The translations under genes were made by a program, and so were the position numbers. A DNA stretch of 64,000 bases from Phaeosaccion multiseriatum (lineage: Eukaryota > Protista > Ochrophyta, other classes): contig OZ218961.1 of assembly GCA_965112735.1 (NCBI GenBank), positions 620,001 through 684,000 of the forward strand, given 5' to 3'. Shown here piece by piece: positions 54,311 through 60,406 of the stretch (positions within the stretch are counted from its first letter, which is position 1; every line of letters starts with the position of its first letter). The notes below the pieces were generated by a model. It was not told the DNA's origin, made no database searches, and saw only the letters and a list, made by a program, of their open reading frames with translations.

Positions 54311-54871
54311 TCGCCTCCCCAAGATGTCTGTATCATGGACTGAGGACGAGCGACAGTAGTAACAAGGAAACAAGGGGGGAGGGGGGAAGGTTTAGGCGCA
54401 CGAATGCCAATAAAGGGGGGCAAAACTCCTCCCACAGCGCACAACGCCTTGATACAACAAAATCAAAGGCACATCGAGATCTTGTTCTCTTTGTCGTGCT
54501 CTTCTGGCAGTAGGCACGTACCCGCTGCAGCAGAAGAATGGGAGCGTACTCCTTCTCCTCCTTTTCTGTACTTCTAAACCACTGCACTGCTGGATGGCGC
54601 TCGTTGATTGTCCCGTTCTTCCCTCTCTCGGGAGTGTTTGTTGTTTAGGGGGGGGGGGGGGGATTTAAAAGAGAGGCTGGATTCGGTGGGGAAAATGGAT
54701 GCCAATAAGGAGAAGGAGAACAGGAGAAAAGCGAGGAGGACCAACAGTGACAAGGGAGAGGAAATGAGGAAAATGGAAAGGCATTTGTGAACTCTGATCT
54801 CTGATCTCTCTCATTTCTTTTTCTTTCGGTGAGACATTACTTTTAGACAATTTCTGCCAACTTAGCGCCCC

Positions 54872-55942
54872 TCAGTCCTGGCAGTTGCAGGGATGCCCAT
54901 TGGCGTGCACCCACTGCTTGATCTCCTCAAAGGTTTTGGCGTCGACGTCCCATTCGTCTTCGCCGCTCAATTCTTGATACACTCTGTCCCTGATGAGCTG
55001 TGGGCACGACTGTTCGTCCCACTCACACTGCACTTCCTCCGATCTGAGCCATTTCAGCACAGCAAGGCTCTTACCGTGCATGACTGCCCACAGACAGACC
55101 TTCTCATCCCAATCACAGAGGTGGCGAGCATTGGCGTGGAGGAACTGCAGCACCTCGAGGCGGCCCTCTACAGCTCTACGGCCCTCTACAGCTGCATTAC
55201 AAGCCCCCCAGCGCCACTCGTCATAATCATTCTCTTCCAGCAAGGCTCTCGTGGGAGGATGCTCGAGAAGCCATTCCATGACAGGGATATGCCCACCCCA
55301 ACATGCTTCCGCCCAACACCGCTCACCAAATGGTACATGACCCTCCGATAGCAACCACTAGAGCATCTCCAAGTGCCCTTCCGCAGCTGCCTCGCCACTC
55401 ACGGAGGAGCCGTCACCGTACCCTGGGCACTGCTCCTTGTCGGGAAGGTCCTCCGAGCGCAGCCACTTCAGTACGCTCAGGCCATGCTTTCTGTTCTGCG
55501 CTGTTGCGTGAATCACTCTTTCACCCCAGGGACAGTCCTTGCCATGGAGGGCCTTGCATACCTCGACATCACCGTACCGAGCAGCGGCCTTGAAGAGCTT
55601 GGCGCTTAGCTCGAGGCCCTGCTGACTTGTCGCCCAGTTCAAGCACTCCACGGAGCTGACCACAGATGAGTATGCTGTCTTCACTGCTGGATACAAAGCG
55701 CTGTAGCTGGCCTTCCACTGCTTCCTCACACCTGCCACGAAGCAGTAGTGCCCCTTTCCCACGTGCTCCAAGACAACGTTGAGAAGCTCGAGCTGCGCCA
55801 AGACCTCATGGCACGCTTCAAAGAGCAGCCCATTGTCTACTTGGTCGAAAACCCCCTCAGTCGCTGCTGCTACTGGAGACCGTCTCATCCGCCTTCTTTG
55901 TGTAGACTCACGCGCCCCGCCACTCGCAAGTCCCGACGCCAT
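54872..55942 (-). pseudogene. F-box-like/ankyrin-like family copy 4, interrupted by an in-frame TAG
   Basis: TAG at 55358-55360 where the paralogues have AAG (EML-K-WL). It also carries an 18-bp internal duplication (AVEGRR-AVEGRL). Confidence 0.8.
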
Positions 55943-56760
55943 TCTTCTCCGCTGCAACCTCGAGTCCACTGGGCTTTGAAATGACACCTTGGAGAATGGG
56001 ACAGATGGGAGTAGCTACCATGTACGATGAATACTCGTTCTTGCTGCCCCGATACAGCACTCTGTTGGGAACCGATGAGCTTCTGCGGAAGGGGACAGCA
56101 GCAGCCACAGCAGGAGGAGCAGACACGCGAGAGCGGAGTGGTGAAAAGTCGGATGAGTGGGCATGGAGGGGAGTTTATGAGAAGGGAAACACTACTGGAA
56201 AGCACTCGGGTTGGGGAGCGGGACTATCTCCATGGGTCAAAGCCACCGTCCGACAGGAGGCACGCACCCGCTGTAGGAGAAGGATAGAGCCGCTTCTTTC
56301 TTCTCCTTCTCTGCTGTTTTTTGTTTTTTTGGCCTGTCTTTTCCAGGCCAGACCCTCCCACTCCATCTGTGACTCCGGATGAGGACGACGGGAACTTTGT
56401 TTTCTGCGCCGAAAGGGATAGAACCTAGACCCTCAGACTCATTGGTAACTGTAAATAATCTTGCAGAATTACTGTGTCGGTAGGCATCTCAAAGGGCTAC
56501 ACGAAGAGCTATACAGTAGCGCTTCTCCCAGCGTCATTTTCCTGAGCTCGTCCAGAAATTTATTGGTTCATAGTATAAACTTCGTGGTAAAATAAGGGCC
56601 TTTCGTGGGGGGGTTCAGCTCCTCGAGGCAAGACAGCCAACGGCCGTCCATGCAGCTGTCCCCGTACTGTACGTACTGGCCGTCGCTCCATAGCACTCAG
56701 AAAGACAAGCCAAAGCACTGTCTGCCCCATTTCTTCTTCTCTCTGCCAACTTAGCGCCCC

Positions 56761-57786: not shown

Positions 57787-58859
57787 CCGCCTTCTTTGTG
57801 TAGACTCACGCGCCCCGCCACTCGCAAGTCCCGACGCCCTTCTTCTCCGCTGCAACCTCGAGTCCAGTGGGCTTTGAAATGACAAGCCTGAGAATGGGAC
57901 AGATGGGAGTTACTGCCCTTGTACGATGAATACTCGTTCTTGCTGCCCCGATACAGCACTCTGTTAGGAACCGATGAGCTTCTGCGGAAGGGGACAGCAG
58001 CAGCCACAGTAGGAGGAGTAGACACGCGAAAGCGGAGTGGTGAAAAGTCGGATGAGTGGGCATGGAGGGGAGTTTATGAGAAGGGAAACACTACTGGAAA
58101 GCACTCGGGTTGGGGAGCGGGACTATCTCCATGGGTCAAAGCCACCGTCCGACAGGAGGCACGCACCCGCTGTAGGAGAAGGATAGAGCCGCTTCTTTCT
58201 TCTCCTTCTCTGCTGTTTTTTTGCCTGTCTTTTTCCCACGGGCCAGACCCTCCCACTCCATCTGTGACTCCGGATGAGGAGGACGGGAACTTTGTTTTCT
58301 GCGATTTTTGATTTTTCTTTTCTTGATGGCACTTAAGGGTCTCCAACTCTCCTTTACATACTCTCCTTCATGAGACAGTTTTGGCTACGCGTCCCAGGTA
58401 ATAATAAGGAGTGCAACAAGACCCTCAGACTCATTGGTAACAGTAGTGGCACTGCACTACAACTGTACATTACCACCCCATTTTCTTCTCTTAACACTCG
58501 ATTTGCGAAAGAATCGCCCAAATCGTCCGTTTTGTCGCGCGGGACAAGGGGGAGTGCTTTTGCAGAATTACTGTGTCGGTAGGCATCTCAAAGGGCTACA
58601 CGAAGAGCTATACAGTAGCGCTTCTCCCAGCGTCATTTTCCTGAGCTCGTCCAGAAATTTATTGGTTCATAGTATAAACTTCGTGGTAAAATAAGGGCCT
58701 TTCGTGGGGGGGTTCAGCTCCTCGAGGCAAGACAGCCAACGGCCGTCCATACAGCTGTCCCCGTACTGTACGTACTGGCCGTCGCCCCATAGCACTCAGA
58801 AAGACAAGCCAAAGCACTGTCTGCCCCATTTCTTCTTCTCTCTGCCAACTTAGCGCCCC

Positions 58860-59894
58860 TCAGTCCTGGCAGTTGCAGGGATGCCCATTGGCGTGCACCC
58901 ACTGCTTAATCTCCTCAAAGGTTTTGGCGTCGACGTCCCATTCATCTTCGCCGCTCAATTCTGGATACACTCTGTCCCTGATGACCTGTGGGCACGACTG
59001 TTCGTCCCACTCACACTGCACTTCCTCCGATCTGAGCCATTTCAGCACAGCAAGGCTCTTACCGTGCATGACTGCCCACAGACAGACATTCTCATCCCAA
59101 TCACAGAGGTGGCGAGCATTGGCGTGGAGGAACTGCAGCACCTCGAGGCGGCCCTCTACAGCTGCATTACAAGCCCCCCAGCGCCACTCGTCATAATCAT
59201 TCTCTTCCAGCAAGGCTCTCGTGGGAGGATGCTCGAGAAGCCATTCCATGACAGGGATATGCCCACCCCAACATGCTTCCGCCCAACACCGCTCACCAAA
59301 TGGTACATGACCCTCCGATAGCAACCACTTGAGCATCTCCAAGTGCCCTTCCGCAGCTGCCTCGCCACTCACGGAGGAGCCGTTACCGTCCCATGGGCAC
59401 AGCTCCTTGTCCCATGGGCACTGCTCCTTGTCGGGAAGGTCCTCCGAGCGCAGCCACTTCAGTACGCTCAGGCCATGCTTGCTGTTACGCGCTGTAACGT
59501 GAATCACTCTTTCACCCCAGGGACAGTCCTTGCCATGGAGGGCCTTGCATACCTCGACATCACCGTACCGAGCAGCGGCCTTGAAGAGCTTGACACTCAG
59601 CTCGAGGCCCTGCTGACTTGTCGCCCAGTTCACGCACTCCAATGAGCTGACCACAGACGAGAACGCTGTCTCCACTGCTGGATACAAAGCGGTGTAGCTG
59701 GCCTTCCACTCCTTGCTCACACCGGCCACGAAGCAGAAGTGCCCCTTTCCCAAGCGCTCCAAGATGGCACGAAGCAGCTCGAGATTCTCCAGGGCCTCAT
59801 GGCAAGCTTCAAAGAGCAGCCCATTGTCTACTTGGTCAGAAGCAGGAGCACTGGAACTACCATCAGTCGCTGCTGCTACTGGAGACCGTCTCAT
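58860..59894 (-). CDS. F-box-like/ankyrin-like repeat protein, family copy 6
   Basis: Intact ORF; first in-frame ATG at 59894; 18-bp duplication giving CPWDKELCPWD. Confidence 0.85.
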   Translation of the reverse strand: MRRSPVAAATDGSSSAPASDQVDNGLLFEACHEALENLELLRAILERLGKGHFCFVAGVSKEWKASYTALYPAVETAFSSVVSSLECVNWATSQQGLELSVKLFKAAARYGDVEVCKALHGKDCPWGERVIHVTARNSKHGLSVLKWLRSEDLPDKEQCPWDKELCPWDGNGSSVSGEAAAEGHLEMLKWLLSEGHVPFGERCWAEACWGGHIPVMEWLLEHPPTRALLEENDYDEWRWGACNAAVEGRLEVLQFLHANARHLCDWDENVCLWAVMHGKSLAVLKWLRSEEVQCEWDEQSCPQVIRDRVYPELSGEDEWDVDAKTFEEIKQWVHANGHPCNCQD

Positions 59895-60406
59895 CCGCCT
59901 TCTTTGTGTAGACTCACGCGCCCCGCCACTCGCAAGTCCCGACGCCCTTCTTCTCCGCTGCAACCTCGAGTCCCGTGGGCTTTGGATGGGGGGACAGATG
60001 GAGTAGCTACCATGTACGATGAATACTCGTTTCTTGCTGCCCCGATACAGCACTCTGCTAGGAACCGATGAGCTTCTGCGGAAGGGCACAGCAGCAGCCA
60101 CAGTAGGAGGACTAGACACGCGAAAGCGGAGTGGTGAAAAGTCGGATGAGTGGGCGTGGAGGGGAGGCGAGATACTGGAAAGCAGGAAGCGATTGGGGGG
60201 GGGGGGGCGATACTTCAGGTCAAAGTCACCCGAGAGCAGAGGTACGCACCCGCTGTGATAGGACTCCTGGACGTGTGTTTGTAAATACGATCGTATTTAT
60301 CCCAATCAGAGAGAGAGAAAGAGAATGACAGGTGACAGATGTGAATTGGTGTGGATGAGGAGGCCACTGATTGCGATTAGGGAAGAGCCTCTTAGTACAA
60401 CCATAG

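Follow-up and report, generated by a model that had tools for sequence, protein, structure and literature searches.

A 66-nucleotide piece of an ankyrin-family 5' leader upstream of a predicted PhyA-Gnt1 gene in Phaeosaccion multiseriatum: a possible case of 5'-exon capture

Background and main finding

We consider the DNA upstream of a predicted PhyA-Gnt1 gene, encoding a putative Skp1 prolyl hydroxylase and GlcNAc transferase, in a 64,000-nucleotide (nt) stretch of the Phaeosaccion multiseriatum genome (contig OZ218961.1, positions 620,001 to 684,000; G000:C12:620001-684000 within a eukaryotic genome of 67 Mb in 22 contigs). This whole stretch is called the window, and positions refer to it unless a contig is named. 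A 66-nt piece in front of the gene is similar to the leaders of the adjacent ankyrin-repeat genes and of a larger ankyrin subfamily; it spans the junction between a non-coding first exon and the intron that follows. In our view, the shared piece most likely arose in the ordinary course of the proliferation of a gene family, and it may represent the capture of a 5' exon. We put the probability that the piece is homologous to the family leader and derived by duplication at about 0.95, and the probability that PhyA-Gnt1 is spliced from it as from a non-coding first exon at about 0.55.

Similarity of the upstream piece to the ankyrin leaders

A preliminary description of the window had reported, by eye, about 44 matches in 57 nt between 54512-54568, upstream of PhyA-Gnt1, and two sites upstream of ankyrin copies, 56258-56313 and 58157-58212. 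Global alignment of the first site with 56258-56313 gives the same figure, 44 identical columns of 57, and the two ankyrin sites are identical in sequence. A further partial match had been placed at 60241-60257; it is found at 60240-60258, with three mismatches to the 19-nt core AGGCACGYACCCGCTGYAG. The identity of leaders among the local ankyrin copies is trivial, because these copies lie in three tandem units of 1.9-2.1 kb, 93-99% identical over long stretches, with one ankyrin-repeat open reading frame (ORF) each; the informative comparison is the one with the PhyA-Gnt1 upstream region only.

In that comparison, the top local alignment covers 54503-54568 (66 columns, score 32), and BLAST aligns 37 positions ungapped with 30 identities. 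The preliminary description had proposed a check against shuffled sequence: 1000 dinucleotide-preserving shuffles gave a mean score of 11.7 (standard deviation 1.4, maximum 21), and none reached 32. The core AGGCACGYACCCGCTGYAG has four matches in the window, where 0.10 are expected by chance, all at the sites named above; its exact matches in the whole 67-Mb genome number three, and all are inside the window. The homology of the piece with the ankyrin leaders is thus real and includes the exon-intron junction.

The splice signals proposed earlier were also found. On the minus strand, which carries all four adjacent genes, the donors read CAGCGG/GTACGT upstream of PhyA-Gnt1 (G at 54521) and CAGCGG/GTGCGT upstream of two ankyrin copies (G at 56267 and 58166); a dispersed family copy has CTG/GTAAGT with its G at 33306. 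Polypyrimidine-AG tracts, read from the sequence, end at 54340, 55988 and 57888. The main features are as follows (UTR, untranslated region).

51221-54310, minus: PhyA-Gnt1 coding sequence, one exon that begins with the first ATG (54310-54308) and ends with the stop (ORF list and Pfam)
54311-54339, minus: putative 5'-UTR part of PhyA-Gnt1 exon 2 (read from the sequence)
54340-54521, minus: putative PhyA-Gnt1 5'-UTR intron, 182 nt; donor GTACGT (G at 54521), polypyrimidine-CAG acceptor ending at 54340
54522-54575, minus: segment homologous to the 3' end of the ankyrin non-coding exon 1 (aligned tract 54503-54568; nhmmer envelope 54496-54575)
54872-55987, minus: ankyrin copy 1, with in-frame TAG at 55355-55357 and a short internal duplication (ORFs 54872-55354 and 55358-55987; Pfam Ank_4)
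55988-56267, minus: copy 1 predicted 5'-UTR intron, 280 nt, GTGCGT…AG (donor from profile, acceptor read from the sequence, paralog conservation)
56268-56360, minus: copy 1 non-coding leader exon, 5' end putative (paralog and local alignment)
56361-56398, minus: copy 1 promoter-proximal motif of the GGCCTCCTCATCCRGAGTCACAGATGG type (nhmmer, E = 2.4e-8)
56761-57885, minus: ankyrin copy 2, intact ORF; canonical ATG changed to CTG, first in-frame ATG at 57786-57784 (ORF list, Pfam, paralog alignment)
57888-58166, minus: copy 2 predicted 5'-UTR intron, 279 nt (sequence and leader profile)
58167-58293, minus: copy 2 leader exon with promoter-proximal motif at 58255-58293 (nhmmer, E = 4.3e-9)
58860-60119, minus: ankyrin copy 3, frame open to 60119; CGG at the canonical ATG position, first family-type in-frame ATG at 59894-59892
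59980-60258, minus: copy 3 tentative 5'-UTR intron (donor G at 60249) and diverged exon-1 junction (60240-60258; match with three mismatches)
31944-33558, minus: dispersed family copy (ORF 31944-33002) with its own leader; donor CTG/GTAAGT, G at 33306

The leader structure in the ankyrin subfamily

The leader structure was obtained from a MAFFT alignment of the upstream regions of 12 paralogs. In the subfamily centred on C12, the contig of the window, the 5' order is a promoter-proximal motif, a non-coding exon 1 of ~100-150 nt, the donor junction, a 5'-UTR intron of 180-330 nt and an acceptor. The junction consensus is …TTCTGCTG..GCKG/GTRMGTGCCTNCT..CCRGA. The GT is invariant across paralogs, as GTAAGT, GTGAGT, GTACGT or GTGCGT, and a polypyrimidine-AAG/CAG acceptor is conserved ~20 nt before the canonical ATG of the family. 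The introns (~180-330 nt) often contain variable CT microsatellites. Considering that GT and AG are kept while intron length and interior vary, the junction is, on this pattern of conservation, a genuine 5'-UTR splice donor of the ankyrin subfamily.

Three variants of the junction are distinguished: the commonest, …TTCTGCTGGCGCTG/GTAAGTGCCTGCTACCGGA; that of the local trio, …TTCTCCTACAGCGG/GTGCGTGCCTCCTGTCGGA; and a third, …/GTAAGTGCCTACTCCC. The degenerate junction GCKGGTRMGTGCCTVCT has 21 exact matches in the genome, 18 of them on C12, where 17 sit ~250-320 nt upstream of an ankyrin ORF and the eighteenth is the PhyA-Gnt1 site. The intron-start motif GGTRMGTGCCTNCTNCCRGA is matched at 25 places in the genome but nowhere in the reversed control, and a few further sites come from the third variant. 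About 25 other genes of the family, far from PhyA-Gnt1, have the same junction. It had been considered earlier that the motif might be a common repeat unrelated to these genes; the junction searches, which associate it with the ankyrin subfamily, argue against this. The leader is recognisable in part of the family only: none was seen in 31 of 40 sampled upstream regions, mostly those of distant members on C8 and C16.

Three loci with unusual 5' structures can be mentioned. On C4, a solo fragment of 252 nt (L065:642-892; G000:C4:3515141-3515391) extends from the promoter motif through exon 1 and the donor into the intron; its identity with a C12 unit is 93%, and no ankyrin ORF follows it. On C11 (L066; G000:C11:917500-921800, minus strand), a complete family-type 5' structure with promoter motif, leader, GTAAGTGCCTACTCCC donor and family-like intron precedes a low-complexity non-ankyrin ORF (MASMVVRR…); this locus may be a second non-ankyrin gene behind the family leader. 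In the window itself, the ankyrin copy at 7413-8684 (plus strand) has an intron-less, collapsed 5' variant: at 7600-7760 the promoter motif is joined directly to TTCTGCTGCTGCTG, with neither the GTAAGTGC donor nor an intron nor the METRLQ N-terminus.

The promoter-proximal motif

The promoter-proximal motif GGCCTCCTCATCCAGAGTCACAGATGG is 27-36 nt long, sharply bounded and located 100-150 nt upstream of the donors. It has 38 matches in the genome and none in the reversed control; those in the window are listed below.

56361-56398, minus: promoter-proximal motif
58255-58293, minus: promoter-proximal motif
39301-39341, plus: promoter-proximal motif
7613-7650, plus: promoter-proximal motif

A weak match is present upstream of copy 3 at 60352-60367. 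Since the motif also precedes the start codons of unrelated genes by 50-150 nt (bromodomain, SARAF and CRAL-TRIO; loci L067-L083), we regard it as a candidate general promoter-proximal or transcription-start element of the alga. Its opposite strand reads 'PSVTLDEEAAK'; a coding role was rejected, there being neither codon periodicity nor a continuing ORF.

The piece upstream of PhyA-Gnt1

The PhyA-Gnt1 site reads …TTCTTCTGCTGCAGCGG/GTACGTGCCTACTGCCAGA and fits both degenerate motifs, GCKGGTRMGTGCCTVCT and GGTRMGTGCCTNCTNCCRGA, with no mismatch; it is the only one of the 25 GGTRMGTGCCTNCTNCCRGA matches to adjoin a gene with a recognised non-ankyrin domain. Its features are those of several variants: the local copies also have CAGCGG, the common variant has TTCTGCTG, and the third variant has GTGCCTACT.CC; the site matches the form GGTAAGTGCCTACTCCC of the third variant at 15 of 17 bases.

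The 66-nt piece, which takes in the end of exon 1 and ~19 nt at the start of the intron, is oriented as in the family and lies 211 nt upstream of the PhyA-Gnt1 start codon. These ~19 nt fit GGTRMGTGCCTNCTNCCRGA; for the rest of the putative intron, BLAST and the genome DNA search gave no similarity to family introns. A whole-genome DNA search with the 561 nt upstream of PhyA-Gnt1 returned the self-match only, and 54300-54860 outside the piece has no match anywhere in the genome, i.e., the homology ends sharply. The putative acceptor is a polypyrimidine-CAG tract, and its distance of 29 nt from the start codon agrees with the geometry of the family. Going upstream from the donor, the first 264 nt of the sense strand are free of ATG. 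One out-of-frame ATG, at 54336-54334, falls within the putative exon 2; it would be spliced out if a second candidate acceptor, ending at 54328, were used.

Four junctions face three ankyrin ORFs here, and the fourth, at the place where the leader of a further unit would be, faces PhyA-Gnt1. A profile built from non-local family leaders only has its best non-self match in the window at 54506-54568 (E = 0.0069 in 128 kb) and misses the leaders of the local trio. Therefore, the piece is not a recent spill-over from the adjacent array. Distant family leaders resemble it no less than the neighbouring ones do, and it is an older member of the same leader lineage, predating the local tandem array.

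The PhyA-Gnt1 gene

The open frame at 51221-54373 (minus strand) has 1050 amino acids, with the first ATG at 54310. Pfam identifies PF13640 (2OG-FeII_Oxy_3; 1.5e-15, residues 347-430) and PF11397 (GlcNAc glycosyltransferase; 1.9e-64, residues 552-860). A 2OG-Fe(II) oxygenase and a GT60-type GlcNAc transferase thus lie within a single polypeptide, the arrangement of a bifunctional PhyA-Gnt1, and the gene next to the shared piece is therefore predicted to be a PhyA-Gnt1 fusion, i.e., a Skp1 prolyl hydroxylase and GlcNAc transferase. A fusion of PhyA and Gnt1 is known in Pythium ultimum (van der Wel et al. 2019, Glycobiology 29:705, as cited in PMC11570480).

In a comparison of the Pfam profile with the genome, positions 1-316 of PF11397 align to this gene as a single unbroken piece. 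Its coding sequence is one exon of 3.1 kb. The four other PF11397 loci of the genome (C3, C4, C8 and C10) match in two or three pieces, which suggests that they are divided by introns. Retroposition of PhyA-Gnt1 into an ankyrin intron was considered and found unsupported: downstream of its stop, neither remnants of an ankyrin unit nor a poly(A) tract were found.

The ankyrin family and the local array

The ankyrin family is very large, clustered and fast-evolving, and the local three are recent tandem duplicates. A six-frame genome search with copy 2 gave at least 113 scored matches (378 candidates), mostly on C12, C8 and C16, with the highest density on C12. The window holds six family copies, among them 7413-8684 (plus), 31944-33002 (minus) and 38212-39291 (minus). 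Ank_4 and Ank_2 exceed the Pfam cut-offs in copies 2 and 3 and in the remaining copies of the window; AlphaFold models the repeat region with a pLDDT confidence score of 85-97, and its Foldseek matches are ankyrin-repeat proteins. Synonymous divergence (dS) is 0.08-0.13 among the three local copies, and 0.28-0.41 when these are compared with other C12 subgroups; pairwise ratios of nonsynonymous to synonymous divergence (dN/dS) are 0.37-0.64. The closest protein matches to copy 2 in a word-index protein search have at most 34% identity (Chrysoparadoxa, Phytophthora).

Paralogs at 65-70% protein identity begin with the canonical METRLQRRR. This start (METRLQ…) is lost in all three local copies, where GTG, CTG or CGG is found (55940-55990, 57840-57890 and 59940-59990, minus strand); the trio shares a new in-frame ATG (MRRS…) ~33 codons downstream, at a position occupied by Leu in other subgroups. 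In the dispersed copy at 31944-33002 the old ATG is still present, although out of frame. Copy 1 is 87% identical to copy 2 and has one TAG; it is probably a pseudogene, or else the TAG is a sequencing error. Copy 3 has a duplication of seven codons (DKEQCPW repeated, at 59400-59425). The TAG and duplication of copy 1, together with the duplication in copy 3, point to rapid turnover or pseudogenisation within the array.

The C-terminal tail W-V-H-x-N-G-H-P-C-x-C is invariant across 26 aligned paralogs, including the Chrysoparadoxa protein (34% identity); an example is 56764-56810 (minus strand). Its His/Cys pattern could be metal-binding.

Two ordinary neighbours lie between the ankyrin copies: an ORF with FNIP repeats (3.3e-30) at 34096-35259 (minus) and an ORF with RRM_3 and RRM_1 domains at 36433-37356 (plus).

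Discussion

We presume that duplication or rearrangement in the family-dense region would have placed a family 5' exon with its donor before PhyA-Gnt1. PhyA-Gnt1 probably uses the piece today, with 54522 as the last base of the first exon and the intron ending at either 54340 or 54328. There is a separate copy of the leader for each gene; neither a shared promoter nor splicing across genes is required. The opposite direction, in which the founder of the subfamily copied the PhyA-Gnt1 leader, fits equally well, and is possible because only the C12 subfamily carries the leader.

Use of the piece by PhyA-Gnt1 is favoured by its strand, by the intact GT in GTACGT and by the acceptor at the family geometry. 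The retained tract is, moreover, short, sharply bounded and centred on the donor, despite a dS in the family of only 0.28-0.41. At such divergence neutral flanks are expected to be still alignable, yet none is; therefore, the tract has true breakpoints bracketing the donor. Several points weigh against the proposed capture, in addition to the equal fit of the reverse transfer. The homology is confined to 66 nt. The promoter motif was not detected by nhmmer upstream of the PhyA-Gnt1 leader. With the acceptor at 54340, an out-of-frame ATG would remain 23 nt upstream of the start codon. Detached 5' structures exist elsewhere, namely the full structure before a low-complexity ORF on C11 and the solo fragment on C4, and the latter means that non-functional debris of this kind does occur.

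The same solo fragment and missing promoter motif lend some credit to a different explanation, that the 66 nt are a dead relic, either all that is still recognisable of a fourth ankyrin unit or a stray part of the 5' structure, and that PhyA-Gnt1 uses its own promoter with no splicing. The core flanking the donor is the best conserved in the family and would be recognisable longest, and the region is rich in family copies, some of them broken (the TAG of copy 1, the canonical ATG lost in all three). A relic would not, however, be expected to combine the orientation of PhyA-Gnt1, an intact GT, a fitting distance to a strong acceptor just before the ATG and an ATG-free sense strand upstream; nor does it explain why homologous flanks fail to align at a dS of ~0.3-0.4. 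A relic is the main competing explanation, and we consider it less probable than use of the piece.

The preliminary description had proposed more, namely that unrelated coding sequences share one promoter and one non-coding first exon and form a co-regulated module of a Skp1 modifier and F-box-like receptors, possibly with one leader spliced to different coding sequences. Several points speak for it. The junction is otherwise restricted to the ankyrin subfamily; F-box proteins bearing ankyrin repeats are known in protists (PMC9485057), and glycosylation of Skp1 changes which F-box proteins bind it (PMC11570480). The N-terminus of the family was compared by hhalign with ten F-boxes of the same genome: the alignment covers 35 columns in the expected register (ELLxxVMxxVGxGHFxFVAxVSKEWK), with P = 7.7e-5 and a probability of 62%. 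The Pfam F-box is also the most frequent sub-threshold match, since PF00646 gives such matches for three of 28 N-termini (best E = 0.041), and PF12937 for one, at 0.2. Weak neighbours in the Atlas (scores 0.80-0.83) include F-box and F-box+Ank clusters at 0.80-0.82. An F-box-like N-terminus is thus plausible from profile comparison.

Its identity as an F-box was nonetheless not established. The matches are below every accepted threshold: the window copies have no Pfam F-box at E ≤ 0.1, and a genome scan with PF00646 found 13 F-boxes, none from the ankyrin family. A profile search of PDB sequences with the family N-terminus returned no F-box protein. Structure models say little on this segment: AlphaFold gives the N-terminus low confidence (pLDDT 50-68; 56 in a model of the N-terminus only), and Foldseek with the full-length model finds ankyrin-repeat proteins only.

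The idea of one promoter and first exon for all is wrong, since every gene has its own copy of the leader; the promoter motif of the ankyrin copies was not detected at PhyA-Gnt1. A module is not needed to explain the neighbourhood: adjacency of ankyrin genes to PhyA-Gnt1 is expected by chance, because this family of more than 100 members is densest on C12 and has six copies in the window, and the junction recurs at the ~25 distant family genes. In addition, the local copies are without the canonical ATG, and one has a stop. We conclude that a dedicated Skp1 module is not supported and improbable; the enzyme is tied to these three genes by position and by the 66-nt piece only.

It is tempting to assign a regulatory role to the ~35-66-nt element spanning the donor: as a cis-regulatory switch, through a donor-sequestering hairpin or a bound factor, it could couple PhyA-Gnt1 to the ~25 F-box-like ankyrin receptors in an oxygen-linked SCF regulon. 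We regard this, too, as improbable. A hairpin is indeed predicted at the PhyA-Gnt1 donor (54490-54545, minus strand; CTTCTG…GCAG…CTGC CAGAAG; -23.2 kcal/mol, z = -2.15), with one compensatory pair between GCAG/CTGC there and ACAG/CTGT in the local ankyrin copies. A conserved RNA hairpin around the donor was rejected as not robust: a more stable fold than in shuffled sequence was obtained for the PhyA-Gnt1 copy only, and base pairing is in other registers in the variants.

Alternatively, the element might belong to the 3' end of the ankyrin gene upstream, as part of the 3'-UTR or as a signal for termination, its position before PhyA-Gnt1 following from copy 1. In the tandem array, each element does lie 350-700 nt past the stop codon of the preceding copy. 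Across arrays, however, each gene has a single element: the 5'-most gene is preceded by one, and the 3'-most gene is followed by none, which assigns the element to the 5' side. The distance between element and ATG is conserved, dispersed single copies (31944-33002, for example) have the element on their upstream side only, and the tandem-unit homology after copy 1 stops ~20-65 nt past its stop, well short of the element; the proposal is very improbable. Finally, chance, or CT-rich low complexity combined with a generic donor consensus, is practically negligible: the distal part of the 57-nt alignment is CT-rich, but no shuffle reaches the alignment score, the 19-nt core is unique to these sites in 67 Mb, and the intron-side motif has 25 matches against none in the control.

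Comparison with known systems

Recruitment of a 5' non-coding exon or promoter before another gene, giving a chimeric 5'-UTR by segmental duplication or rearrangement, has been described for young chimeric genes and retrogenes. The present case resembles it in that a family-derived non-coding exon with its donor stands in the same orientation before an unrelated coding sequence whose ATG is preceded by a usable acceptor. It differs in that the PhyA-Gnt1 piece is only 66 nt long, the family promoter motif was not carried along and use of the exon is putative. PhyA-Gnt1 shows no sign of retroposition, having no poly(A) tract after its stop.

Spliced-leader trans-splicing in kinetoplastids, dinoflagellates and nematodes also gives many mRNAs related short leaders ending at a GT donor, as predicted here. 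The leader copy of each gene is, in contrast, in cis, 180-330 nt upstream; the sequences differ between subgroups, and the leader is confined to one ankyrin subfamily and PhyA-Gnt1. Rfam gave no match at the gathering threshold within 54000-61000, and no family resembling a spliced-leader RNA. Trans-splicing was rejected on the cis position, the differences between subgroups and the Rfam result.

As to the Skp1 hydroxylation and glycosylation pathway, in which PhyA acts before Gnt1, both catalytic domains are in one ORF here, as in the Pythium fusion. The ankyrin family is comparable to the expanded F-box receptor families of SCF ligases in being large, clustered and fast-evolving and in having an N-terminal helical segment that is F-box-like in profile comparison; unlike in F-box receptors, this segment is under the Pfam thresholds and mostly without the leading Leu-Pro, and Skp1 binding is putative.

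The protocadherin and UGT1A clusters are likewise arrays of tandem units in which promoter and first exon are repeated with every unit. The arrangement is reversed in our case: the first exons are alike and the coding exons differ, and every first exon has its own acceptor a few hundred bases away. For annotation, it can be noted that the ankyrin subfamily has a predicted non-coding exon 1 and a 5'-UTR intron, and that the start codon of the three local copies is moved ~33 codons downstream of the canonical ATG. If PhyA-Gnt1 does splice from the ankyrin-derived leader, this stramenopile-like alga would offer a clear example of 5'-exon capture and would show how a fast-duplicating family spreads usable promoter and exon pieces along a chromosome.

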